Below, piece by piece: positions 26,624-51,984 of a DNA stretch of 64,000 nt. Position 1 is the stretch's first letter. Every line of letters starts with the position of its first letter. The DNA is from Chlorokybus atmophyticus (Eukaryota > Plantae > Mesostigma and Chlorokybus algae): NCBI GenBank assembly GCA_009103225.1, contig RHPI01003156.1:1112159-1176158 (forward strand), in the 5' to 3' direction. A program made the position numbers and the translations under genes. Under the pieces are notes generated by a model. It did not search any database. It was not told where the DNA came from and saw nothing but the letters and a program-made list of their open reading frames with translations.

Positions 26624-29438
26624 TCATAACCTTCCTGTGAATGCCAGCAGCGCAGCGGCCAGCAGCATCACCACAGCAAACACCTGCCAGCGAAGCAAGC
26701 ATTAATGTGTCAGATGGCATACCTCCCACAAACAATGTCAAGTGTATGCGCAACAAAGCCGCCAGCCACAAAGAGCAGACTTGCTTGCCTGCTGGATCAG
26801 CCCGAACGGCTTCAACGCCTCAGCTCGCTGTTCGGAGCCGCCGAAGCCAAACGCATACGCTGCGTATGCGAGGAAGGCCAACAGCACCACCTGCAGCACA
26901 ATGCATGAGATTGACGTCACACAACCTTGACAGCTCCAACTTCCACACAACAAGCACATGCGCGTGCTACGCGCACAAGAACGCACCAGACGGAAGCTCA
27001 GCGAGCTTGCCGCCAAGTCTGCTGCTTCTTGTTTCCTACAAGAGTGTGCACGTAAGCAGAAGGCCTCTTGAGTCAAGATCAAACACAACCATACAAGCCA
27101 TCAGCAAAACACGGCACAGCGCTTACTGCAGAGCTTTCTGCCTTCCTTTTTCGCACTGCAGCAGCAACTTTTTGACCGCCTCTTCAGTCTCTTTCACGCT
27201 CGGGTCATCTAAGTTTGCTTTCACCTTCATAACATGGCAAACACTGCAACTTCAAGGACTCGTTCCCCAAAACAGCCACACCTTCCAACATGGCCTCAAC
27301 GCCTCACCTTCGCACGCAGTTCGGACGCAAACTCGACCAATGATGTGTACACAGCAAGCATGGAGGTGGTATTCACAACGATCCTGGCGCTGGCGCCTGC
27401 AAGACACGATGTCATGTGTTGTTGCCGCAAGCGTGAAAACATCCGCATGCAACAATGTTTGCAACATGCATGGGACGCACCTCTTCTCATCTTGACATTT
27501 TTCCTAAAAACATCGACGTTGTTGTAACAGACTGTCAGAGTGCCCATTGCCATAATCTAAGCAGACCACATCACATCTGTGTGTCGTGACAACAGCAAAC
27601 CGGCATGCGTAATTTACAGCATCACAATGCACATGCCTGCGGGATGGCAACAAAGCGGAACACCGCCGGGTCTTTCAACCTCTCCAAGTACGTCAGCGCG
27701 TCCGTGCCGTGGTGCAAAGCATTGGTGATGAGCTCGTTAAGACACCTCAGCGCACTCGAACCGTTCTTATCAACATTCTGGAAGTCCTGGCACCACAGCT
27801 CCAAGTCAACATCGGTCAGGCGCACACATGTAGCTGTGTCTGTGTGTGCGTGTGCGTGCTTATACAGGCGCTTAGCGCATATGTTCATGTGTGTGTGCGT
27901 GCGTGCTAACATGCATGTACGCGCACACACAGTGCTACATGTGTTGAACAAACACTGCCAATGTACGCATGCTTACATATGCATGCACATGTTCGCTAGC
28001 ACGCGAAGGTGCAGGTCCGGGCATGAGTGCATGTCTGCGCGCATGTGCACGTGTCTCTTGACATAGCCCAGTAGTACCTCTAAATGTGTGGCATACTTCC
28101 CCCACACTTCCTTCGGCCAAAACATGCGTGGGGCCGGCAGCTCCGTTATGTCTTCATGATAGTCTCTGATGATGTTCGTCTTCTGCAGGAAAAGCCCGAG
28201 CGAATTCGACAGGTCATCCGCGCTGGCAAAGTAAGGCTCTTCAAGCCCGGCATTAACAAATAGATTGGACAGCCCGATGCCGACCAAACCCGCGACGTAG
28301 TGGCAGTACAGGTCATAGTCCTCCTTTGTGATAACCTGTGATGCAAAAGGTGTTAGTATGAAGTCTTGTTGGTGTTGTGGTTGCTTACACATACTTGCCT
28401 CACGGCCGATAAACTCTGCCATGCCTGCACCCATGCGTTTGGTAATGTCCTTTATGACTTCTTGAAATCTGCAGGAAGCCATCCGTTTGTATTGACTGAT
28501 TGCGTTACATGCCCTCATTGTTCGCACAGTAGTTACCTGAACTCACAAGAATGCTTACTTGGGTGAGAGCTTGAGGTATGACTTTGTGACCAGCGAGTAC
28601 TTCTCCATGAGGTCAGCGTAAGCTCCTGTCCCGCCTGAATGAAGTCAGCAGCCGTGTACACACAGGATGACCCCCCTAAGACAACAATGCATACAATCTT
28701 AAGAATAAGGTGCTTGCACGTACATCTGATGGTCCATGTCGGGTCCTCGAGGTGCGTGTAGAACGTTTGCAATGCGGGTACCTTCACATCCTTTGGTATG
28801 GACATGTCATCCTCTGCATGGCAAGGACATGTCAAGCTGTTTACAGCTGTTACCAACTCAACAAGTGCTTGTAGGACACAACCTCCAAGCATTGTCTGTA
28901 ATATGTCACTTGACAACACATGGCTGCAACATTCCCAGTGTAGCTTCACGCACGCACGGTCATGAACGGTAAAGGTGAATTAAAGCATGAGCTCAACTCA
29001 CCGACAGTGTCCAGAGCGCGCAATACCAAGTAGAAAATGCACACCTGTTGAAGGCCAAACCATCGTAAGCTCGCAGTTGATACCAATGCAGTGTGATAGT
29101 TATGCCCCCATTGCATGCATGTTCTCCTTATGAGCAAACTGACTGGAACTAAGCAGCAATGCGAAACCCTGATGCCAATCACTCAAGAAAGCAGTGTGCA
29201 TGCATGCTTCCTCTCTTTCCCTCACGACACTTACGGCATCTCTCAGTTCCGTCCCCAGCTGCTGTATGACAACAGCAAACGACCTCGACACCCTATTCAG
29301 CATTCCATAGCAGAAATCCAGGTTTGGATCATCCCACCGCCGCTTCGCCGCCGCCCTCGCCAGCAGGGCAGCCCGACCAAGCGCCAAGAGCTCAGCGGGA
29401 CGACCCAGGCTGGCCGCCACAGCCGCACCCATGCCCAT
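26624..29438 (-). CDS. SQS: Squalene synthase (canonical), multi-exon, with a hydrophobic C-terminal anchor; last exons approximate
   Basis: [51 protein letters not shown] and VKMRRG are all intact. Confidence 0.95.
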
Positions 29439-30189
29439 GGCTGGAGAAGAGAAAGCAGTGAAGAACAACGACGGCCACGACTACGACGAGGACAATGACA
29501 AACACAATGCCGCCGCCGCCGCCCCCCCTCCAGCTGCCGCCAGCTGGCAATTGTGATGCATAAAGAGTCCGTTGCTTCGCTGTTTTGGCGGGTAGATGGT
29601 GGTGGCGGTGGTAATGACGGTTGAGGCATTGTAGTTGTTGGCGGTGGCGGTGGTGGTGGGAGGGGGGGAAGGGGCATTCCAGTGCAGTGCGGAGTAGGGT
29701 GTGGAGCTGAGGGACGTGCGTCGACGGAGCAGAGTGCAGACGACAGGTTTTGCTCTGCTGTCAACAGGTTGCAAGCAGGTGACCAACGCTGAGAGCAGCA
29801 GCTTAATGCTGTCCAATCCTTTGCCTTCAGTACAGTACTATGTGCAGTGCAAGGGAGAGTACGCACTCTCTGTGTTTGTTATGCACGTGGTGTGGCAGTT
29901 CAGTAAGCTTACGGACTGCATGCTCCCATTTCGTGATGAGCTGAATGGGATGCTTTCCATTTTGTTCCATGCGCAACTGCCTAAGCACCTGGTGCTGACT
30001 GTTGCATGCGTGCGCGAGTGTGGTCGATTGAACTCGACCACACTCTAGCAGTGCTTGCTTACGACTTCCACATCCAGGCAAACCTGGACAGTGCGTGCAT
30101 GTTTGTTTGCGTGATAGATCATGATGGGCGACTTGACTCGAGCATGCTGCAACGGCATTGGCAACAGCAGCGACAGCAGTAACAAACCA

Positions 30190-30455
30190 TGCCGCACAGT
30201 GGGGGAGAGTTGTGTTTATCGGTGGGAGTGTGAGCTTCGAGCCGAGTCCTTTGTTGCTTCGTAAACAGCTTACGTTGTTGGGGTCATGGGTGTGTTCAGT
30301 ACCACAGATGGGAGAATTGACTGGTTTGCTGGAAAGGTGGGACTTGCACCCTGTGTATTGTCACGCATAGGTTTGGGCTTGTAAGATACAGGAAGCGTAT
30401 GAGGTGCTTGATACGCAATATACGGGCAAAGTGGTCATGTTAATGACTAACTGAC
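30190..30455 (+). pseudogene. Decayed, inverted partial copy of the 3' end of the Zn-dehydrogenase gene
   Basis: [51 protein letters not shown]...EAYEVLDTQYTGKVV aligns with 23093-23375 (minus strand) but has indels and frameshifts. No upstream exons were found. Confidence 0.88.
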
Positions 30456-32746
30456 TTGAGAAATGCGGCTGTGGGAGAAATGTGGCTTGTGTAGAATATA
30501 TGCAATGGTGTGCATGTGACTCACCGTTGCACGGCCTTGTCACATACGCAAGCACAAGCACAGTCCAACATGGCAACAACTTGTTTTACCACCGGGCTGC
30601 CTATACAACCTCAGCTATCTAGCTTCGCTATTGCCCTTGTATGTGTGGCTGTTAGATGGTATGCTTGAGCACGCTTTCCATGCATGTACAGCAGTACCCT
30701 CACACTGTATCGGTTTTATGTAGTCACATGTACAGTCACCATCAACTTCTCGCGGTGATTGTTGCTTGCCGCCAGACCAGTCCTTAAACAAAAAAGGCAG
30801 CTCAGCCCACACGCCATGATGTATTGAGGTTGTCAAAAGACACCAGCGTGTAGTCGGAACAGGGTAGACTGACATTCTATTCCTCGTCAAATCAGTCCTA
30901 GATTTCGTCCCAACTACACAAGCACAACAAACATCAGTTGCATGACGACGAGCAGTTGCGCAGCAGCAGTGGTGGCGACATGGCGGTGTGCATGCTGCGT
31001 CCTAAGCCTCCGCCACCACCACCACCAGCAAAGTCGTCCGTTGGTACCAGTCACTGCACTTATAACATACCACAACGATGATGACAACAGGGCAACATTG
31101 ACACTGAGGGCCTCCTGCTAAAGCACAGACCAGCACGTGGTGCTGCCCTTGCAAGCTGGCGTGTATGATAGTGCGTGTTGGTAACGTTTCCCTCTTCCCC
31201 TTCGCTCTGTCTCACGAAACCTGGGTTCTCACCTGCGCATGTTGTTGTTGTTAATAGTCTGTGCGAGCCGGTAGCCAAAGTACAGTGCGCAAGCACTTGT
31301 TGTTATTGCTGCTGTTAATGTTGCTGTCTTTGTTAGTGGAGCGGCTCGCGTGCGCAATCCTTCCAGCACGAGCAACAAGAAGCAGGTTTTTGTCTCCACG
31401 CAGCAGTGCGCATGCAAAGCAGGTGAACTTTGCATGTAGCGAAAGTACGCTTGGCCTGCTAATATGTGGCCTGTCAAAGGTTGTGCAAGCATTGGAACTG
31501 CAAGTCAAGTCTCTCTATTCCTTCGCACTGCAGTGGCCTGGCATTGGATGTGAGGTTGCGTATCGCTTAGAAAGCTCAGCACCCGCATATGCGCACAGAC
31601 AGACCCCAAAACTGACAAACAAAACAGACAGACACACAGTTACAACGACAAACACATGCACACACACGCGCACGCACGCACGCACGCACGCAGTGCCGGA
31701 ATGCCCTTGGCATGTTATGTTAGTTACGTTAGTAGTAGTAGAATGTACAGCCTAGCAGTGGTTGAACCGGTTTGGTTCGGCTGCTTCAACTGATTGCAGT
31801 GTTGTAAGCGCTTGTGCATGTGGTGCTCGCAGGTGTGGTGCGTGTTCACAACAGACTGCACACGCGTGACATTTGCATGTGCAACTATACAACTGGTAGC
31901 AGTACATCATGAGCGTGCAGGCCATATAACTTTGTCTAAGGAGAAATATTATAGGGACAGAGTTTCAAGTTTAGCGTAGCCTAAGCGTCTAAACAACAAC
32001 AATGATGGTACTAGCATCACCACCAGTTACACTTACAGCACTGGCAAATTGCAACAAGAGCCATACCCTCATGCAGGTGCAGCAACTCCACCACCTTGCC
32101 GCCCCTATCGCCGCCGCCGCCGTCGCCGTTGCTGCTGTTGACAATGCGTTAAGGCACTGAATGCACTTTTTCACTTGACGCTCAATGCTTAACGCCGCAG
32201 TGAGCATGCATTCAGTGTCTTAACGCTAAGTTCTGCGCTGGTTTAAGCTTGGCAGAGCTAAGCTTAGCTTAGCTCAGCTTGGCGGCGGCGGCGTGTAAGG
32301 CGTTGCTGAGCAGTTGACAGACGAAGCGAAGGCATAACAGGAGGAAGAGGAGGAGTTCAAGGGTGAAGGAAATCCCTTCCCTATCTCAACCTGCTGTGAG
32401 GTGAATGCGAGGCAATTCCTGCTGTGCTTTGCTGCTGGCCTCTCAGTGCCTCACAGCTGAGCATGCATGCATACCTGTGTGTAGCAGCTGGCATGCATGC
32501 ATACCTGTGCGTCCGTGTATGCGTGTGTGTGGCTCTGGGACGCTGGTGCTTGTCTCAAACAAGCATCACAACTCAAGCTTGCGATTGTTTCACGCATTTA
32601 GCTGCTGTTAAGCCCGATTGCTGACCCTCACGGATATCACTGCACATTTGCACATCATTAAGAATGGCTCAGCGAGTGGAATTTGTTTACCATGTCATCA
32701 ACCAAAGTACCACCTCATCCGCAGTCTCAGCGTTCAGCTCAGTGTC

Positions 32747-35441
32747 ATGGCCGACGTGGATGGCGAAGTGGCCGCTGTTGTGAGCAGACTGCTTGCGCCG
32801 CCTTCAGCTGAAGACGTCCAGGTGAGAGTGTATTGTTATGCATGACATTTGTTAAGAAGTTTGTTGAGAACATTGTTGAGAAGGTTGTGAACCAGCGAGT
32901 GAAAGCTTATAGCAGTGTAGGTGCTTGAGGTGAATGAGTGAGTCTCTGGTATTGGTAACGAGAGGGTGACAGTGTTGATGTTGATGAAAGCGCGATGCGT
33001 GCAGGCGTATTATCAAGCAGAAGTTGGCGCGGGTTTGGCCGTGCGCTACATTGATGCGACGCTGAGCAAAGGTAAGAAAGCGGTTACACGCACGCACGCA
33101 GAAATGGTTGGGCGTGTGCACATGCGTGCAAGTGTGTGAGCGTGTGTACTCATGCTTGTGCGCACGCACCCACACTTACGAGCGCTCAGGTGTACACGCA
33201 GTGTGTTTGATGCATGTGTCCATGTCCACAGTTGCACCTGATGGACACATTCTTACTCTGCAAATCACAGTGCTTGCAGACAATATGTAGATTACAACAA
33301 CCCTGCATGCAGGCGTAATTGCCACGCGCAACTTTGGTGAAGGCGACGTGCTCGTAAAGGAACCGAAACTCGTCGGCGCTCAGCATTTTGCAAACAAGGT
33401 GACAGCCAATCTCCACAGTATTCTCACACGCATGTGCATGCACGCCATGCACAAGCGTGTGTGCGTGTTAGCATACACAGCAAGTACTGCATCACCTTTC
33501 TCTCTTTCTTCATCAGGCCGTTGCACATGTCTGCAGCCACTGTTTCCAGTACATTGGCTCGGTAGAGCAGCAAATAGGCAGGCGCATATTGGTACTCTCA
33601 ACATCCACTTCGCCACATCACGCCCATGGCGAAACATCTCACACATGCTCCGATGAAGAACAAGAAGAACAAGAGCAAGCACAAGTTGATGATGATGATG
33701 ATGATGGCAATGCTGTTGAGATCAGCTCAGAAGTCCAGCATTTGGCTTCACAGCTCACTGAGGGCAGCATCAAGCTTCCATTCACTGAAGATTTTGCTTT
33801 ACCTGAGGCTGTGGCTTGCCCTGGCGGCTGCGAAGATGAAGCATTCTGCAGGTATGTGTGCATGCGCACGTGTTCACGTAATGTGACTGCTACAAGCTGC
33901 TTCTGTGTTACTCAACTCTACGTTGTGGTGTTGTACTAGCACCTTATGCGCGGAAGCGGAGTGGGAGTTTTGTCATCAGTTGTTGTGCAATGGAACCGGC
34001 TCGAACGGCAACGCGCGTGCGCTAACAAGCTTCAAGGCGCACGCGAATGAAACCAATGACATCTTTCATGTAGCCGCACAGGCAAGTGAATGCAGAGAAT
34101 TCAGTTGAGGTGTGCGTGTTTTCTTTTTTGAAGTTGGATCATGACACTTGCTTTGTAGGTTATTGCTGCTACGGCCTTGCGATATCTCCGCTTATCTGAA
34201 GGCAAAAGGCCACATTCTGAGTCTGCGGGTGTCATTATCGACTTGTTGATGGAAGCCTGGAGGCCGTTTGGTATGGGTCATAAGGCCAAATGGTCCGAAT
34301 GCGTCGCTGCTCCGGAAGAAATGAGCGTGAATGAAGTGATACAATTCGGGCAACAGCTGAAGGAGGTGCGTTTTGTTGCATGAGTTGAGACGTGAATGGA
34401 GTATGTATTGTCTCATCTTATGACAGCTTGCAGGGGAGTCACTGTCGCTACTCAGCGATGCCATTGGAACTTATGATCCTGTCATGAAGTTTCTGCTGCA
34501 ACAAGACGTGTATGAGAGCATCGTTGGCATGTTCGAGCTCAACAATCTGTGAGTTGATTTTATTTTGTTGTCTATGTGTATTCGATGATTTCTGTTATGG
34601 CTGGCTTGACACGATTATCCAGCGCTATGCGCTTATGTTTGTTGTAGAGACATGGTGGTTGAGTCCCCAGTAGAGCGCTATTTTCTTCATATGGATGGGC
34701 AAGCGCCACAGCTCAAGGTGATTGGTCATTACCACTGTGTGCGTGCGTGCGTGAGAGTTCTAGTGAGTGAATGATTTACCAACTGGCAAGATGTTTCTTT
34801 TATTCCAAATAAGGGATGCAATACAGGCCATCACGCAACCGCTGTTGGATGCACTCGGGCCTTCGTACGCCGATCATTGCGAAGGTAATGTGATCATGAC
34901 GAGTTGACACGGTTTGTAGTATTGTTGAGATGACTTGTTTGGTAACATCACAGTTTGTTGGTTGCAGGGACGTGCTTCTTCCCCATACAGAGCTGCATGA
35001 ACCACTCGTGCAATCCAAATGCGCACGCTTTCAAGCGAGATGAGGTGAGACACACACATGCGCGCGTGCGTGCGCGTGCCCGTGCATAAAACGGAAACAA
35101 ATCAAGCAAGCAGATAACCTTGCATACATGTGTGCTATATGTCATATTTCTGAGCCTTCTGTACTGCATTGCAGGACACTAATGGGAGCGCTGTCATCCT
35201 GGCCAAGCGGCCCATCTTAGCTAGCGAACAGGTACACACATTTATGTATATGTATATGTATACTGCACCAATGAAGCTTGTCTCGCTGCAGTACTTTCAA
35301 GGCCTTAGAACTGATGTTGGTTCTAATGCGCAGGTTATGATCTCATATATTGATGAACATGAAGAGTTGGAGGATAGACAAGCGGCGTTGGCGGATTACG
35401 GATTCCATTGCGAGTGTGAGAAGTGCCGAGCAGGGAGGTGA
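32747..35441 (+). CDS. ATXR2: SET/MYND-type protein lysine methyltransferase, ATXR2-like
   Basis: VAAVVSRLLAPP; KEPKLVGAQHFANK; CSHCFQYIGSVEQQIGR; CPGGC; FKAHANETNDIF; MFELNN; QSCMNHSCNPNA; ISYIDE...DYGFHCECEKC. Confidence 0.88.
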
Positions 35442-35639
35442 CATCAAGTGCGTATGTGAAAGGTGCTATTGGCAAGCAGTGGTGTGTTGCAGCATGCGGT
35501 TTGTCAACGGTGGTTGGGCACGTGTGTACATGGCTCGGTATGTACTTTGTGAATTACAAATATGTGCGCACTCCATTGCAAGATGCTCAAAGTATGATCA
35601 TGCCAACCACCGCACTCAAGCAACCACAACTCTCAACAG

Positions 35640-36740
35640 CAACCGCCAGTCTGGCCCGGGCTTGGCGGGTGCTACAGGCAATACACATGGGTGCTAACAC
35701 CGCGCGCACACAGCTCAACAGCATCCCATACAATGTCGCACGCATCACTCCCGCCATGCCCGCCTCACCGTCGTCGCCCACGCCATTGCCTTGTTCCATG
35801 CTCGCCACGCTCATAGCACACCGTGTGGCGCTCACGCCAGTATAGTGCGTCCGCCTCAGCGGTCATGAGCCTCGACAACACTGGCGTCCACCCTGGCACG
35901 GACGCCAATATCTCCGCAACATACTCCAGCACTGCCTGCGCAAAAGGAGATGACAACATAAGAAGTGCCTCGGAGGAAATGTTTGTGCGGCACAGAGTGT
36001 ATATTACAATATTAACCACACAACTCGATGCAAGACTACTTACCCTGTAGAGGTGCCTCCACAAATTGGAAGCACACCGACTAACGCTAGAAGCAAGCTA
36101 TTCATCACATGAATGTGGGTAGGAGTTGGGGCGGTCAGTACGGATAAGCTGAGGTCTGCGTGTGCGCGGTGTTGGCACCCATGTATACAGGATATGCTGC
36201 CAGTAGTTGTAGACATGCACACACGTAGCCAAGTAGTGGTAGTTGAGTGCGTTGTGAGTACCTAGCCCGGAGGTGAAATAGCACTGTGACTGCTGCTGAC
36301 TGTTTGCTTGCAGCGTGTGCATGACTACATGCATGTCTCATGCTTATGGCCCCTTGCATGCGGTCTTATCAGCACTCCATCTTTTGTACACTACATATAG
36401 TGCATGTATGTAGTGTATGCACAAAAGCAATGCACAGAGGTAAACCAAGCACACCAAAGAAACAGTCATTACAACGCAACAAGCCAGCAGCAAACAGCAC
36501 GCAAAGGGCTGGCCCGGGCCCCTAACAATGGCAAACCGAAAAACAACTTGCAACACGCATGCAATCAACTACAACTCAAGGCAGGCAGGCAGGGGAGTGT
36601 GCCGTTTTGCTTCATCCTAAGTCACATTTTCTGTAGATTGGGTCATGAGTGTTACTGCTGGCCACCTGGGAGGTGGCATCGTCTGATTGGAAGGTGTTGC
36701 CAATAGTGATGTGTTGACTTGCGAAAAGCAGTTCTTCAAC
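35640..36740 (-). CDS. Possible unidentified multi-exon gene (or remnant)
   Basis: Exon-like blocks with GT/AG borders, e.g. CYFTSGLGTHNALNYHYLAT|PQLIRTDRPNSYPHS and AVLEYVAEILASVPGWTPVLSRLM. No family was recognised and no complete model could be built. Confidence 0.3.
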
Positions 36741-37152
36741 TGTGGCTGCTAGCGCACATGTGTAGCGCATGGTGCTTGGTATGTAGTTTGTGCATTGTGC
36801 AACACATGCATCGTTTTCGCACGTGCACTCTGTATCAAGGTGCTCATGCTAACATAGCACTCAAGCAGCTCATGTACATAGCACCGCTAGGCTGCGTGCT
36901 TGCGGATGTGCGCGTGTGAGCGGATGCAGCGCAGGATAACGCCAGAGCAACAGAAGTTAACTACGCATTGGCATGCATTTGAAACCAGAGTGCACAACAG
37001 AGCCTGTTGAACAGAAAAGGCGAAATGAAGTGGGAATATACAAGCAGAAATTACAATATGAACAAAAGGCTACGGCATACACTATACAAAGTGCCGCACT
37101 ATCACCATCCATGTGAAGAAGAGAAAGAGAACCCCCCCAAAAAGTCGTCCCA

Positions 37153-40100
37153 TCACATGACATGGTCAAACCCCCACATCTCCAGCCGTCGCACTCTGAA
37201 CTCCGCACTCGCCGCCAAACACTCCGACCCGTACGTGTCGCAATCACCGCTGCTTCCCTCATCTAAATCAGAATCCACTCTGAAAGCGAATCGCCCGCCG
37301 CCTCCGAACGCGAGCGCGTGACTCTCGCACAGCACGTAGAAGCGGTTGAGGCCCGTGGACGGGTAGATGCGCGGCGTGTTGGGGGACTGTTGGAAGACGA
37401 AACAGTCATTGGAGCCTTGGTAACGGTAGTGGAGGTGCTGCTCCCAGCGGACGCCCATAGCGAAGCCACCGAACACAGCCCCACCTGACAAGCGATGTGA
37501 AGAACTGGCTTTGGAAATCTAGTCAATCAAACAATCACTTGCAGCCAGCTTAAGTCTCGCAACAGGCAGACATAACCGCACGCATCTTGAGACACATGCA
37601 CGCACACATGTGCGCACGCGCACATAAAACACGCACGCACGCACGCACACGCGCACGAGTATGCGTGCACAGATACAAACCCTCTACACATGCACATACT
37701 CACCTGTGTCGCCAATGACTATGAGTGTGGGCCCACCATTGGCCGGCGCCTTCCGATAAAGCGTGCTGAGTGCGATGCCGTGATGGTCGGTGGAGTACAG
37801 CAGGTTCCAAGCGCGTCCTAGGCAGGCCGATGGCAGGGCTCCCGCCACGAACGACGGAAAGTCTTCCGAGAAGAGTGCCGACTCGCCAAGCAGTGTGGGC
37901 GGCCGCAGCCACAGGCCACGCCACCGCGGGGTCCAGACACGCCCGCTACTCGAGGCTGGAGCGCTCTGCGACAACCTCAACCTTTCATTAGCATCAATTG
38001 TGTGAGCCCATTCAGAGTCTCCTTCTCTCCCTTCTGCTTGAGGGCTTTTGGGGCTTCGCCCGGAGTCGGCTATATATATCCCTTCTATGCTTATGCGAGG
38101 GGTCCGGTTGTCGGCGTCATGGAATATATCATCATCACCGTCTGATGATGAGGAGGAGGAGGAGGTGGGAGAGGTGGAGGAGGTAGGCTCTGCTGGTTGG
38201 GCTTCGACAGCGTCGTGCATCGGCAGTAAGTCCTCAGCAGCTTGCAATGGATCGATTGGCGTGTCAACAGTTGCACTGTTGACGCGCTTTGTGGGTGTTG
38301 AAGGGGCTGGGGTCAACAAAGACCACAGGAATGCCGCCTGTGCAAGAGTTGCTTTTACCACTTGTGGTGCAGTCGCGGGCAATTGTCAAGTTATACCACT
38401 TATATAGCAGTGACTCGCATTTGCTTGGTCATGCTCAGCTGTGTCACATTCATAGCACATACCAAGGAGGACGTGTCTGGCCCATCGGGTAAGCTTGCTC
38501 TCATGTTCTGAAGCTGGCGCAATGCATAACAGGATCAGGACCAGCAACAACACTGACATGCAAACATAAACTATGCATGAGCCATAAGGCAGATCAAAGC
38601 GCTACCGATAAGAACGAGGATGACTTGCGAAGCATTGAGCCTCGTTGAGCTTTGCGTCGTTGTTTGCACAACTCCTTGAGCTGCGATACAGCCGTGCGCG
38701 CTGTCGAGTCATCCGCATCCACCTGCATGCGGACAAGACAGATGATGAAACTTGACTCCAGACATAAGCCACCTGCATGCCATTGTTAAGTCACCACCTT
38801 GGCTTCAAACTCTGTCAGACTCTGCGCCAGATGTTGCAGCACGTCCGACATGCCGTTGACCTCTTTGACCAGCTGCGCGGTCCACCCTGCAGGGCAAATG
38901 ACACGCAAGCTAGTCAGAACAACATGTTTGATGATGCACAGAGAACACAGTGTCATGGATGTGGGGTGGACCGACCTTTGCGAAACAAGAGCCGATGGTG
39001 AAGACAGTCCACGTTGTTGTAACATAATGCGAGCTTGTGCATAGCAACAACCTGCATGTAGGTACATGTCAAGGAGCCAAGAGAGTGAGTTTGTTGCCGC
39101 AGTAACGACTTGTCCTTGACAACAGGAGAGTGCACCGGCGAACCTGCTGTACTGCTTCAAGGCGCAAGAACGCTTCGTCTTGAAGCGCTTCCAAACAAGT
39201 CAATACGTCTGGAATGTGCCGCAAAGCATCTAGCGCAACACTGTTTAAACACTTCAAAACGCCCTGCTCATGCGCATCAACCTCAAGCAAGTCCTGTAAA
39301 TAGGACACATCAGCTTGTCAAAAGCAGGCACCATGTGTGACAACACGCTCAAAAGGCATGAAGACCCGACACGCGTTGACCAGCTTTGCAATGAAACTTG
39401 GTTGTACTACAAGACAGCACCTCCAAGTTGTCTAGATGCTGCCAGCACAGTTCCTGCGGCCAGCGTAGCCGATGTGAAATGCTGCGGCACTCAAAAGCAA
39501 GGCGCACTTTCTTTGCAAACATGCCGAGGGCGGTGACGAGCTGTTCATATTCAGAGTCGGCGGGCACCTCCACGTCCGCTGTGACCGCCAAACGCAGCGC
39601 AGCCACTGCAGCCGTGCCAGCTGTCACACGGCAGTATTGGTCGTATTTTGCCACGGTTGCTGCCTGAAAAGTACAGCTGTTAGCCCACGAGTCTCATTAA
39701 ACTACTGCTAAACGCACTGTGAGCTACACGAGAGTGCAACCAACAACACTTGCAACATCAACATATATTGTCGCGCATTGCGCATTACCTGACTCTCGTG
39801 GAAATCTGCCATGCCGGCACCAATGCATTGCGCTGCTTCACGTATCAACTTCTGGTACCTGGTTGCACGAGACTACTTATCCGCATGAAGAATCCAACAC
39901 ATCATATGGGTGCAGCAGGTGTCCACACACACGCCAACATGATTGCCTCAAGAAGTGCCAACATTTATATGAGTTGCAACTTACAACTCTGGAAGCTGCT
40001 GGAAGGTCTCTGCAAGCGAAGGCCAGGCGTCAAAGATCTCAGCGTGAGCTCCATGTCCACCTGCATTGCAGGCCAGTCAATACAATAATAGTCTATCAGA

Positions 40101-41143
40101 GCATCCAGTATCGAACATGTAGTACACATTCAACCCATCATCACTATATTCCAACACTTCTTGGCGGGTCTAATAATACTGCAAGCTCACATTGAATCTG
40201 CCAGCTGGTGTCGTCAAGGCGTGCATGAAGCCCGCGCAACAAGTCCAATCTGCTCCGTGAGTCCAAGAAGCTGTCATCCTCTGCATGGATTTTTCGTAAC
40301 AGTGACGCATAGATTAGTAAGGGAATGCATTGCTGACCATCGCTGTTGCCACAAGCGACTGTTACCTATTGTTTCCAAAGCTGCAGTCACCAAGTGAAGC
40401 ACGCACAGCTGCCAAGAAAGGAGGAGCAGTGAGGCATGCTGGGGTTGAGCTGTCAAGATTGCCAACACCACATGGCGATGCACATGGAGTCATCAATTGA
40501 CTTCAATTGGGCAATGTCTGGTAACTGCTTGCGTGGTACTGGAGATTGCCAACAGGCAAAAGCACACCATGCTCCATGCACGCATGAAAGCGCGTCAATG
40601 ACTGTTGCTTGCAACCGTGATTGCTTCTTTCACACCCGGTGTCGTACTCAACCCATTGCAATAGACTGTACTGGCATAGTGTTGTCCACACATCCACATG
40701 ACACGCACCACCGCGCACCGGAATAGCACGCATTCACAGAGTAGCATGGAGGTATTACGATTATGTTGTCAGAAAGAGACGCAATTTACCTGACTTATTA
40801 CTCCGCCAAACAATGAGAAGGAACTTGGCTGTTGCGTGTGCGCAATGCACAAATGTAATGCTAAAACAAACTTGCAGAGCGATGTGCCATTGCCATTGTG
40901 ACATGCATGTCAGTACACACTCACAGCAATGCGTATCTCCTGCGGCTGCTGATCCACCAGCATCCCAACCGGCCTCGACACCCTCTGAAGCACGCCGTAG
41001 CACAGCCCCAGCCCAGGTGGAGCATCCTGGCCCAGCAGCGAATCAGGGTTTCCTCCTCCTCCTCCGGCGCCAACGGTGGCGGCCGCTGCGGCCGCCCTCG
41101 TCCTGATCCCCGCCGCAACTCGTCCCAGCAACCCTGTGGCCAT
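37153..41143 (-). CDS. Squalene-synthase-like domain with degenerate active site fused to a C-terminal TLDc domain (13 exons, ~729 aa predicted)
   Basis: Exons: 41143-40925, 40408-40366, 40280-40191, 40060-39985, 39858-39789, 39663-39421, 39293-39144, 39051-38976, 38886-38798, 38722-38606, 38513-38463, 38337-37704, 37484-37153. All introns are GT-AG and phase-compatible; total 2190 nt with no internal stop. The N-terminal half aligns with the local SQS. The C-terminus has TLDc motifs (LLYSTDHHGIALSTLYRK, GAVFGGF, YQGSNDCFVF, LAFGGGGRFAFRVDSDL, LEMWGF). The 38606/38513 junction is the least certain. Confidence 0.8.
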
Positions 41144-41740
41144 CTCCCCAGCTCACCTCAACCCTCCCCCCGCCACCCTCCAGGCCGCCCTCACCGCCAC
41201 CGCCGCCCATACCCGTACGGACACGGATGGTGGTGTCAGCACGTACCCGTACCCCTGTGCTGACACCGTCACGCATTACACATTAGCTGCTGTCCCGTCA
41301 CGCGTCATGCGCAAGCGATGGAGTGGCTGGCTTATGACGTGGCTTACGTCAGCCGCCACGTCACGGGCCATCTACTCTAATCGCATGATCAAACGTGGCA
41401 AGAGTTAGCCAATCACAACGCCACACGCAGGAGGCTGTGTCGCGTGGCCCTCGTAACCTCGGTTAAGCAGTTCTTGTCGGCGTAAAAGCGGCGCTCTGTG
41501 GCTGAGTGACTGCGTTTTCCCCGGCGAACGCAGCCACAGAACCACGGTTAGTAGACGAACTGCGGTTCAGTATGCTACACACAAGGGGTTAAATACTCAC
41601 TTTTTCGTCAGCCAGAGAGTTGTCAGGGTGCGCCACGTGGCGTGGCCCGTGCAGCGGCGGCGGCGGCGGCGGCGGCGGCGGCAAACAAGCAGGACAAGGA
41701 GCAGGAGGGGGAAGCACAGGAGAAGTGAGAGGTCGGCGCC

Positions 41741-51276: not shown

Positions 51277-51311
<35 letters not shown>

Positions 51312-51347
51312 GCGATCAATACCATCGCAATGAGAGCATAAAAAGTA

Positions 51348-51952
51348 NNNNNNNNNNNNNNNNNNNNNNNNNNNNNNNNNNNNNNNNNNNNNNNNNNNNN
51401 NNNNNNNNNNNNNNNNNNNNNNNNNNNNNNNNNNNNNNNNNNNNNNNNNNNNNNNNNNNNNNNNNNNNNNNNNNNNNNNNNNNNNNNNNNNNNNNNNNNN
51501 NNNNNNNNNNNNNNNNNNNNNNNNNNNNNNNNNNNNNNNNNNNNNNNNNNNNNNNNNNNNNNNNNNNNNNNNNNNNNNNNNNNNNNNNNNNNNNNNNNNN
51601 NNNNNNNNNNNNNNNNNNNNNNNNNNNNNNNNNNNNNNNNNNNNNNNNNNNNNNNNNNNNNNNNNNNNNNNNNNNNNNNNNNNNNNNNNNNNNNNNNNNN
51701 NNNNNNNNNNNNNNNNNNNNNNNNNNNNNNNNNNNNNNNNNNNNNNNNNNNNNNNNNNNNNNNNNNNNNNNNNNNNNNNNNNNNNNNNNNNNNNNNNNNN
51801 NNNNNNNNNNNNNNNNNNNNNNNNNNNNNNNNNNNNNNNNNNNNNNNNNNNNNNNNNNNNNNNNNNNNNNNNNNNNNNNNNNNNNNNNNNNNNNNNNNNN
51901 NNNNNNNNNNNNNNNNNNNNNNNNNNNNNNNNNNNNNNNNNNNNNNNNNNNN
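51348..51952. other. Assembly gap (605 N), flanked by (AT)n and (GCC)n repeats
   Basis: Run of N. ORFs in the provided track that cross it are artefacts. Confidence 0.99.

Positions 51953-51984
<32 letters not shown>

Follow-up and report, generated by a model that had tools for sequence, protein, structure and literature searches.

The 64,000-nucleotide stretch of Chlorokybus atmophyticus DNA analysed here (contig RHPI01003156.1, positions 1,112,159 to 1,176,158 of the forward strand; hereafter the window) contains, at 37153..41143 on its minus strand, a gene that joins a domain derived from squalene synthase (SQS), an enzyme of sterol synthesis, to a protein of the oxidation resistance (OXR) type, which ends in a TLDc domain. 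Chlorokybus is an alga whose lineage split off early among the relatives of land plants. The dominant message of this gene is the fused transcript. It is probable that the locus is one expressed nuclear gene comprising a folded but catalytically dead SQS duplicate and a complete OXR protein, in which the SQS-derived module contributes to the regulation or targeting of a TLDc domain that docks on the V-ATPase.

Results

Structure and transcripts of the fusion gene

When joined by script, the 13 exons of the gene yield 2190 nt, corresponding to 729 codons with 0 stops, and 12/12 introns are bounded by GT..AG. The components of the gene are as follows.

37153..41143, minus strand: fusion gene, whole coding region; 13 exons and 729 codons, from the exon join, RNA contigs and a public protein match
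41143-40925, 40408-40366, 40280-40191, 40060-39985, 39858-39789, minus strand: exons 1-5
39663-39421, 39293-39144, 39051-38976, 38886-38798, 38722-38606, minus strand: exons 6-10
38513-38463, 38337-37704, 37484-37153, minus strand: exons 11-13
38514..38605, minus strand: joining intron 10; 92 nt, GT..AG, phase 0, its joint seen in two RNA contigs
38463..38513, minus strand: exon 11, the first exon assigned an OXR origin; an OXR N-terminal motif runs across exons 11 and 12
37019..37152, minus strand: 3' untranslated region (UTR); RNA contigs end at 37032, 37020 and 37019

The start codon is preceded by an in-frame TGA 12 nt upstream, and the predicted product is a soluble protein of ~79 kDa. 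The 3' UTR contains the sequence TGTAA at 37055-37051, which we take to be the green-algal poly(A) signal, and the RNA contigs end ~20-30 nt beyond it.

Transcripts were examined as de novo contigs from two RNA runs of the same organism, X1 (from a 2021 study) and X2 (from a 2013 study), placed on positions 36300-41700 with the simple repeats at 38136-38180 and 41644-41700 skipped. Among the sampled words of the 4.1-kb stretch that holds the gene, 44% and 53% were present in the 2013 and 2021 runs, respectively. As coding sequence constitutes 53% of the stretch, this share is the level expected of a spliced message. An X1 contig of 2093 nt and an X2 contig of 2293 nt each displayed 12/12 splice joints; the 13 GT-AG exons and the in-phase, stop-free 2190-nt reading frame proposed in an earlier sequence-only reading of the window are thus upheld by both the script join and the RNA. 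That reading had also called for RNA across the joining intron, whose length it left at 92 or 98 nt. The joint 38513|38606, found in both contigs, skips 92 nt (CT..AC), demonstrating that intron 10 is used in its 92-nt and not its 98-nt form. In the bin 38472-38652, which encompasses the intron, depth was 159.9 of 325.2 in X1 and 25.5 of 51.8 in X2. These values equal the exonic share of the bin (89/181 nt) exactly, showing that no assembled contig lies within intron 10 in either run. In X1 a separate 311-nt contig at 40379-40689 extends from exon 2 into intron 1 at a depth of 7.65, compared with 325 for the spliced contig, indicating low-level retention of the 516-nt first intron.

These data bear on the possibility that the locus houses two separately working genes linked by read-through, with translation of the TLDc protein starting at the ATG at 38504 and a message that is left unspliced, or terminates in some other way, encoding the SQS-like protein. 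The layout has features that such an arrangement would need. The ATG at 38504-38502, probably the former OXR start codon, is only 9 nt past the intron 10 acceptor, while retention of the intron would, as read from the sequence, append 3 codons before a TGA at 38596-38594; rare isoforms, furthermore, are invisible to contigs. However, the 90 nt between this TGA and the ATG are too few to accommodate a 3' UTR, a promoter and a 5' UTR, and the 394 upstream codons, with their many ATGs, would bar scanning ribosomes from ATG 38504. The join is also in frame, and X1 and X2 contained neither contig depth in intron 10 nor a contig beginning at exon 11. The sequence-only reading would have been overturned by a lack of spliced RNA coupled with a separate TLDc transcript from ATG 38504; instead, spliced contigs were seen and none started at exon 11. 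Read-through of two working genes is thus considered very unlikely.

An exhaustive HMMER scan of public proteins revealed one entry (P0001, 718 residues) that is 100% identical to the last exon, with every other match displaying an E-value of at least 1e-30. P0001 is EukProt EP00898 Chlorokybus atmophyticus P002764, which is in turn JGI Chlat1 model 3489. Its Pfam matches are SQS_PSY (4e-14, 53.4 bits against a cut-off of 26) and TLD (6e-27), and hence the fusion is already predicted, unremarked, in public protein sets with both Pfam hits. The sole difference between P0001 and the 729-residue model is the donor of intron 12, which is placed 33 nt upstream in P0001, removing the following segment.

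37705..37737, minus strand: segment absent from the 718-residue public model; 33 nt encoding 11 codons of a TLDc core strand, present in RNA

The joint 37484|37704, skipping 219 nt, is found in X1, X2 and a third run from the 2021 study, X3, supporting the 729-residue form over the public model.

The OXR-derived half

The part of the protein downstream of intron 10 is divided into three regions.

38314..38486, minus strand: conserved motif DGPDTSSLAAFLWSLL, residues 401-416, split by intron 11; common to stand-alone streptophyte OXR/TLDc proteins
37888..38313, minus strand: acidic Ser/Pro-rich linker, residues 417-558, predicted to be disordered
37168..37887, minus strand: TLDc domain, residues 559-725, split by intron 12 (37485-37703)

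A BLASTP comparison of residues 385-560 with fetched TLDc relatives showed that DGPDTSSLAAFLWSLL matches 14 stand-alone proteins at 50-80% identity, at their positions 30-240. These proteins, from Sphagnum, Lactuca, Arachis, Closterium and others, are named 'oxidation resistance protein 1' or 'TLD domain-containing protein', and one Sphagnum protein is colinear with fusion residues 401-728. Residues 401-416 fit the streptophyte OXR N-terminal motif (D/E)GPDTSS(L/F)xAFLxSLL, and a helix is predicted by AlphaFold2 at residues 405-416. As this motif straddles the junction of exons 11 and 12, everything from exon 11 onwards is of OXR origin, and sequence comparison places the fusion point at intron 10, in agreement with the sequence-only reading. 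We had considered whether exon 11 together with the beginning of exon 12 (AAFLWSLL) are relics of the SQS membrane-anchor exons, given the similar sizes involved (51 versus 49 nt); this was ruled out, as the stretch is the conserved OXR N-terminal motif.

The linker is rich in serine (16%), proline (10%) and aspartate (10%), carries a net charge of -8 and has a predicted local distance difference test (pLDDT) score of 30-38. Pfam TLD spans exons 12 and 13 (E-values of 1e-22 and 2.5e-6), covering profile positions 3-60 and 65-169 of 170, and the domain ends 4 residues before the stop codon. The acidic Ser/Pro linker and complete TLDc domain described from sequence alone are therefore both present. 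The domain is a close fit to the streptophyte consensus, with 44-49% identity to fern, moss, Chara and Closterium OXR proteins. Among solved structures NCOA7 is nearest (9e-20, including the V-ATPase-bound chains 7UZG/7UZJ), followed by zebrafish Oxr2 (2e-17) and mEAK7 (8.5e-10). Judged by these matches, the domain is of the Oxr1/NCOA7 type and not the mEAK7/Rtc5 type. The earlier view that TLDc had replaced the SQS membrane anchor is correct in that the anchor is gone; its place, however, is taken not by TLDc alone but by an entire OXR-type gene that brings its conserved N-terminal motif with it.

The SQS-like half retains its fold and has lost catalytic residues

Individual active-site residues in this section are numbered as in human SQS, anchored on 80-DTLED-84 and 219-DYLED-223 (PMC10378455); residue ranges and Y176 refer to the fusion protein. 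The features of the domain are listed below.

38606..41017, minus strand: SQS-like domain, residues ~43-391, exons 1-10; degenerate and without anchor
40276..40375, minus strand: first Asp-rich motif site; ETIED in place of DTxED, its codons split by intron 2 (40365-40281)
39481..39495, minus strand: second Asp-rich motif site; FECRS plus a 2-residue deletion, in place of human R218-D219-Y-L-E222, with D223 missing

In a phmmer search of the Protein Data Bank the domain matched human SQS with an E-value of 1e-44 over 320 residues. The structure prediction that the sequence-only reading had suggested (AlphaFold2, public 718-residue sequence, shallow alignment) returned an SQS fold, with pLDDT >90 at residues 40-400; the TLDc half of the model was uninformative. 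Foldseek superimposed the predicted domain on the crystal structures of human and Trypanosoma cruzi SQS with template modelling (TM) scores of 0.89-0.92 and a root mean square deviation of 2.0-2.4 Å. The structural invariants W-P, C-L-N, N-N and G-M-A are present. By contrast, the active site is extensively altered. The changes comprise Y73H, R77A, D80E, V179A, L183A, F187A, Q212K, N215R, R218F, D219E, E222S, deletion of D223, F230R, Y276C, F288L and K315L, while S51, R52, E83, D84, D85, Y171 (as Y176), R228, Q293, R317 and K318 are kept. The equivalent of the catalytic Tyr171 is present, while Phe288, which acts in the second step, is now Leu, and Tyr73 is now His. R77, R218, N215 and Q212 have a diphosphate-binding role in SQS; they are invariant in the canonical enzymes and all are replaced here. 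Across 75 columns invariant among eight canonical SQS from four kingdoms, 40 are kept and 35 lost, the latter including most of the active-site residues listed above. An apparent loss of the catalytic Tyr171 was discarded, as numbering from both Asp-rich anchors shows that Tyr171 is kept and that it is the neighbouring Tyr174 that is lost. No membrane-anchor-like segment was found in the fusion protein, in which the top 19-residue Kyte-Doolittle window scores 1.57 against a threshold of 1.6.

In the canonical enzyme, mutation of Asp219 or Asp223, or the conversion of cavity Asp to Glu or Asn, is reported to abolish activity, and Phe288 mutants are reported to be without the second half-reaction (PMC10378455). 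The view that the SQS-like half is a pseudoenzyme, as first proposed from sequence alone, is well supported by the loss of motif 2, D80 and other residues essential in mutagenesis; it needs qualifying in that the Tyr171 equivalent is retained. One diphosphate site may partly survive. It could be argued that the domain is still an enzyme with altered chemistry, such as another prenyl coupling or a hydrolase-like reaction, making the protein bifunctional. Y176 (Tyr171), E83-D84-D85, S51-R52, R228 and R317-K318 are all retained, and the replacement of three bulky cavity residues by Ala suggests an enlarged rather than a collapsed pocket. Against this, motif 2 is gone and D80 is Glu, changes each reported to abolish activity (PMC10378455), and R77, R218, N215 and Q212, invariant in canonical SQS, are replaced. 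An altered enzyme is thus highly improbable, and the reading of the domain as a catalytically dead SQS module is preferred.

Origin of the SQS-like half and constraint on the fusion

A second SQS gene is located 8 kb away on the same strand.

26624..29438, minus strand: canonical SQS, from which the SQS-like half probably derives; homology-built model of 13 exons and 454 residues

This protein displays DTVED, DYHED, the YCHY tyrosines, FxxAIPQ and two C-terminal hydrophobic helices (24 Kyte-Doolittle windows >=1.6), and is 40-50% identical to the SQS of plants, a red alga and a fungus. Introns 1-9 of the fusion gene are identical in position and phase to those of its neighbour, and seven exon sizes are equal in the two genes (43, 90, 76, 70, 150, 76 and 89 nt). 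Intron 10 of the fusion is ~7 residues beyond the equivalent intron of the neighbouring SQS and in another phase, consistent with the earlier statement that the joining intron lies near the one that precedes the anchor in the canonical gene. The SQS-like domain exhibits 32% identity to the neighbouring SQS versus 25-29% to other SQS, and in a maximum-likelihood tree it is sister to the neighbouring SQS with support of 87/92. The terminal branches differ roughly sixfold in length (1.94 for the fusion domain versus 0.31 for the neighbouring SQS). These comparisons point to a local, lineage-specific duplication of SQS followed by fast divergence; given the long branch, the exact placement of the fusion domain in the tree is less than certain. 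In the scenario that we propose, SQS would have duplicated within about 10 kb, one copy would have lost its last three exons, and exon 10 of that copy would have come to be spliced, as it is now, to an acceptor 9 nt before the start codon of a downstream OXR gene.

Two further observations concern the neighbouring SQS and its surroundings. In the homology-only model, 3/12 introns have GC donors (GCAAGT after 28399, GCATGT after 27637 and GCAAGC after 26789), a proportion of GC-AG introns that is unusually high for a single gene. At least one plus-strand gene seems to separate the two SQS paralogues, which are thus not immediate neighbours: the intervening 7.7 kb (29500-37000) contain open reading frame pieces at 30158-30370 and at 35169-35441, and the second of these terminates in HCECEKC, a Cys-rich stretch.

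The same comparisons raise the question of whether the SQS-like half is simply a functionless passenger, the OXR gene having by accident taken over both promoter and exons from an SQS duplicate in decay. A branch ~6x that of the parent and the loss of catalytic residues and 35/75 family-invariant positions are features expected of such decay, and the OXR part is complete on its own, with its N-terminal motif and a probable old ATG. A neutral domain would, however, be expected to decay or vanish. In the fusion gene the reading frame (729 codons) and all 12 introns are intact despite a branch of ~1.9 substitutions per site; for the SQS-like half this means that neither a stop nor a frameshift has arisen in ~390 codons and that ten introns are intact. 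The structural invariants are also kept, and the predicted fold is retained with a pLDDT >90 and a TM score of 0.9. We therefore regard a functionless passenger as unlikely and favour a retained module.

Sequence variation in X3 offers a further view of constraint. This run, which is labelled as the same organism, contains 17% of the sampled words, the exon 1/2 joint and contigs at 37907-38273 and 40379-40954. The contig over 37907-38273, in the linker region, has 14 differences from the window, most of them at third codon positions; among the 11 listed, 10 are synonymous, among them a CGT-to-AGG pair that leaves arginine unchanged, and one converts Glu to Asp. X3 also holds window-identical contigs beside the variant one. 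The sequenced strain, CCAC 0220, is now named C. melkonianii, and Chlorokybus species are ~3-8% apart in the published distance table (Irisarri et al. 2021, PMC8611356). X3 is probably a sister Chlorokybus species with some carry-over between libraries of the same study, and the variant contig is most simply interpreted as a sister-species orthologue under purifying selection.

Uniqueness of the architecture and relation to known systems

A word-indexed search of 5.8 billion proteins with precomputed Pfam assignments, in which the queries were the full-length protein with region 1-400, region 400-718 and a 400-residue piece, identified, within the limits set by shared words and length windows, no second protein with both PF00494 and PF07534 besides P0001 and no stand-alone orthologue of the dead SQS. 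The exhaustive HMMER scan with the TLDc exon likewise yielded P0001 as the sole protein with both domains. SQS_PSY was found by Pfam in 0/19 long TLDc relatives, Atlas look-ups returned plain SQS clusters only, and no paper in the library searched mentioned TLDc together with squalene synthase. The gene thus encodes an OXR/TLDc protein with an N-terminal module for which no precedent was found, as well as a new SQS-derived pseudoenzyme, so far in one genus. The sequence-only reading had taken the architecture to be apparently undescribed and would have been refuted by wide cataloguing of it; the architecture is not widely catalogued, no other protein or paper having been found, but the fused protein itself was already in public sets. 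Other retrieved proteins display further multidomain arrangements. P0069, P0074, P0075 and P0113 are long TLDc relatives in which the domain order is RUN-RhoGAP-ELMO-TLDc, and they illustrate again that TLDc readily gains N-terminal modules. P0154, an 839-residue protein from a Logan assembly that matched in the SQS search, contains SQS_PSY together with squalene-epoxidase and FAD-binding Pfam families and is apparently a single-chain fusion of two consecutive sterol-pathway enzymes.

Comparison with canonical SQS (FDFT1/ERG9; Pfam SQS_PSY, PF00494) shows a shared fold (TM ~0.9) with Tyr171, the E-D-D of motif 1 and many structural residues kept, and the canonical Chlorokybus SQS (26624-29438) additionally shares nine intron positions and phases and 32% identity. 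The fusion differs from these enzymes in its ETIED sequence, ruined motif 2, replacement of R77, R218, N215, Q212, F288 and Y73, lack of an anchor and possession of OXR at the C-terminus. With the Oxr1/NCOA7-type TLDc proteins (the plant OXR family, AtOXR1-4-like) it shares a C-terminal TLDc domain and a GPDTSS..AFL.SLL motif followed by a variable acidic linker, the partners at 44-49% identity being from Sphagnum, Pteridium, Chara and Closterium. In contrast, known TLDc proteins carry LysM/GRAM, TBC, EF-hand-like or RUN-RhoGAP-ELMO modules or a short N-terminus, and none has an SQS-fold domain. The fusion is not of the myristoylated mEAK7/Rtc5/OXR5 type, which it matches at only 1e-9 and whose C-terminal helix it lacks. 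NDUFAF6 and its fungal relatives, which function in complex I assembly, provide a parallel in which the SQS/PSY fold is kept as a non-enzymatic module (PMC8007014, PMC12795983). Unlike NDUFAF6, the fusion domain derives from canonical SQS, shows no sign of mitochondrial targeting and is joined to a second protein. It is not an orthologue of NDUFAF6, as all sequence and fold matches are to canonical SQS, and gene structure and the tree tie the domain to the neighbouring SQS.

Elsewhere in the window, an apparent AT-rich island at ~51310-51950 is flanked by (AT)15 at 51279-51308 and (GCC)n at 51953-51984. The low-G+C stretch at 51.3-51.9 kb was dismissed as biology, as the zero G+C of bin 51400-51699 indicates that it is probably an assembly gap.

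Discussion

The favoured model is one in which the TLDc end of the fusion protein, by analogy with the Oxr1 and NCOA7 families, would bind the V1 sector of the V-ATPase, the vacuolar proton pump, and modify how it is assembled or how active it is, while the dead SQS domain would act as an added regulatory or targeting module. TLDc proteins contact V1 at the EG stalk, A/B and C subunits, and their N-terminal modules are thought to provide context or specificity. The TLDc domains of yeast Oxr1p, NCOA7 and mEAK7 dock on V1 and alter V-ATPase assembly or conformation (PMC8804929, PMC11066047), and Arabidopsis OXR5 also docks on the V-ATPase (bioRxiv 10.64898/2026.07.01.735876). The SQS module could exert its influence by way of a residual lipid- or isoprenoid-binding channel, or by contacting other proteins.

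A more specific proposal, in line with the isoprenoid-diphosphate sensor suggested by the sequence-only reading, is that the dead SQS domain still binds farnesyl diphosphate, presqualene diphosphate or squalene in its enlarged channel, and that its occupancy gates the action of OXR/TLDc on the V-ATPase or on a mitochondrial target. This sensor mechanism is attractive because the channel is kept, three bulky residues have become Ala and half of the diphosphate ligands remain; in this precise form it is nevertheless quite unlikely, and the broader reading of a regulatory or targeting module is the one followed here.

Several points weigh against the view of a single gene whose SQS-derived module directs a V-ATPase-docking TLDc protein. 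Assembled contigs drop rare isoforms, and transcripts of only the TLDc or only the SQS part may exist at a minor level. In the structure model, prediction of the TLDc half was poor (pLDDT 40-60), which is attributed to the public input sequence lacking 11 residues of the domain. Conservation of the fusion beyond this strain is so far hinted at by the fragmentary X3 contigs. A mitochondrial location is reported for AtOXR1 and AtOXR2 (PMC13748695), so that the partner of the fusion may not be the V-ATPase. Finally, the database searches were limited by shared words and length windows, and a very divergent second example could be missed.

The fusion is, at present, a single-genus orphan in a non-model alga. 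Within that limit it offers a datable birth of a pseudoenzyme, in which the parent gene is 8 kb away, the introns are identical, the anchor exons have been lost and the next gene has been captured in frame. What TLDc proteins sense, and how they are targeted to particular V-ATPase pools, is a live question, to which the fusion brings a recognizable module derived from a sterol enzyme with a defined ligand channel. It thereby makes isoprenoid control of a TLDc protein a testable idea and, if the sensor mechanism were true, a single polypeptide chain would couple the supply of sterol precursors to organelle acidification or redox protection.

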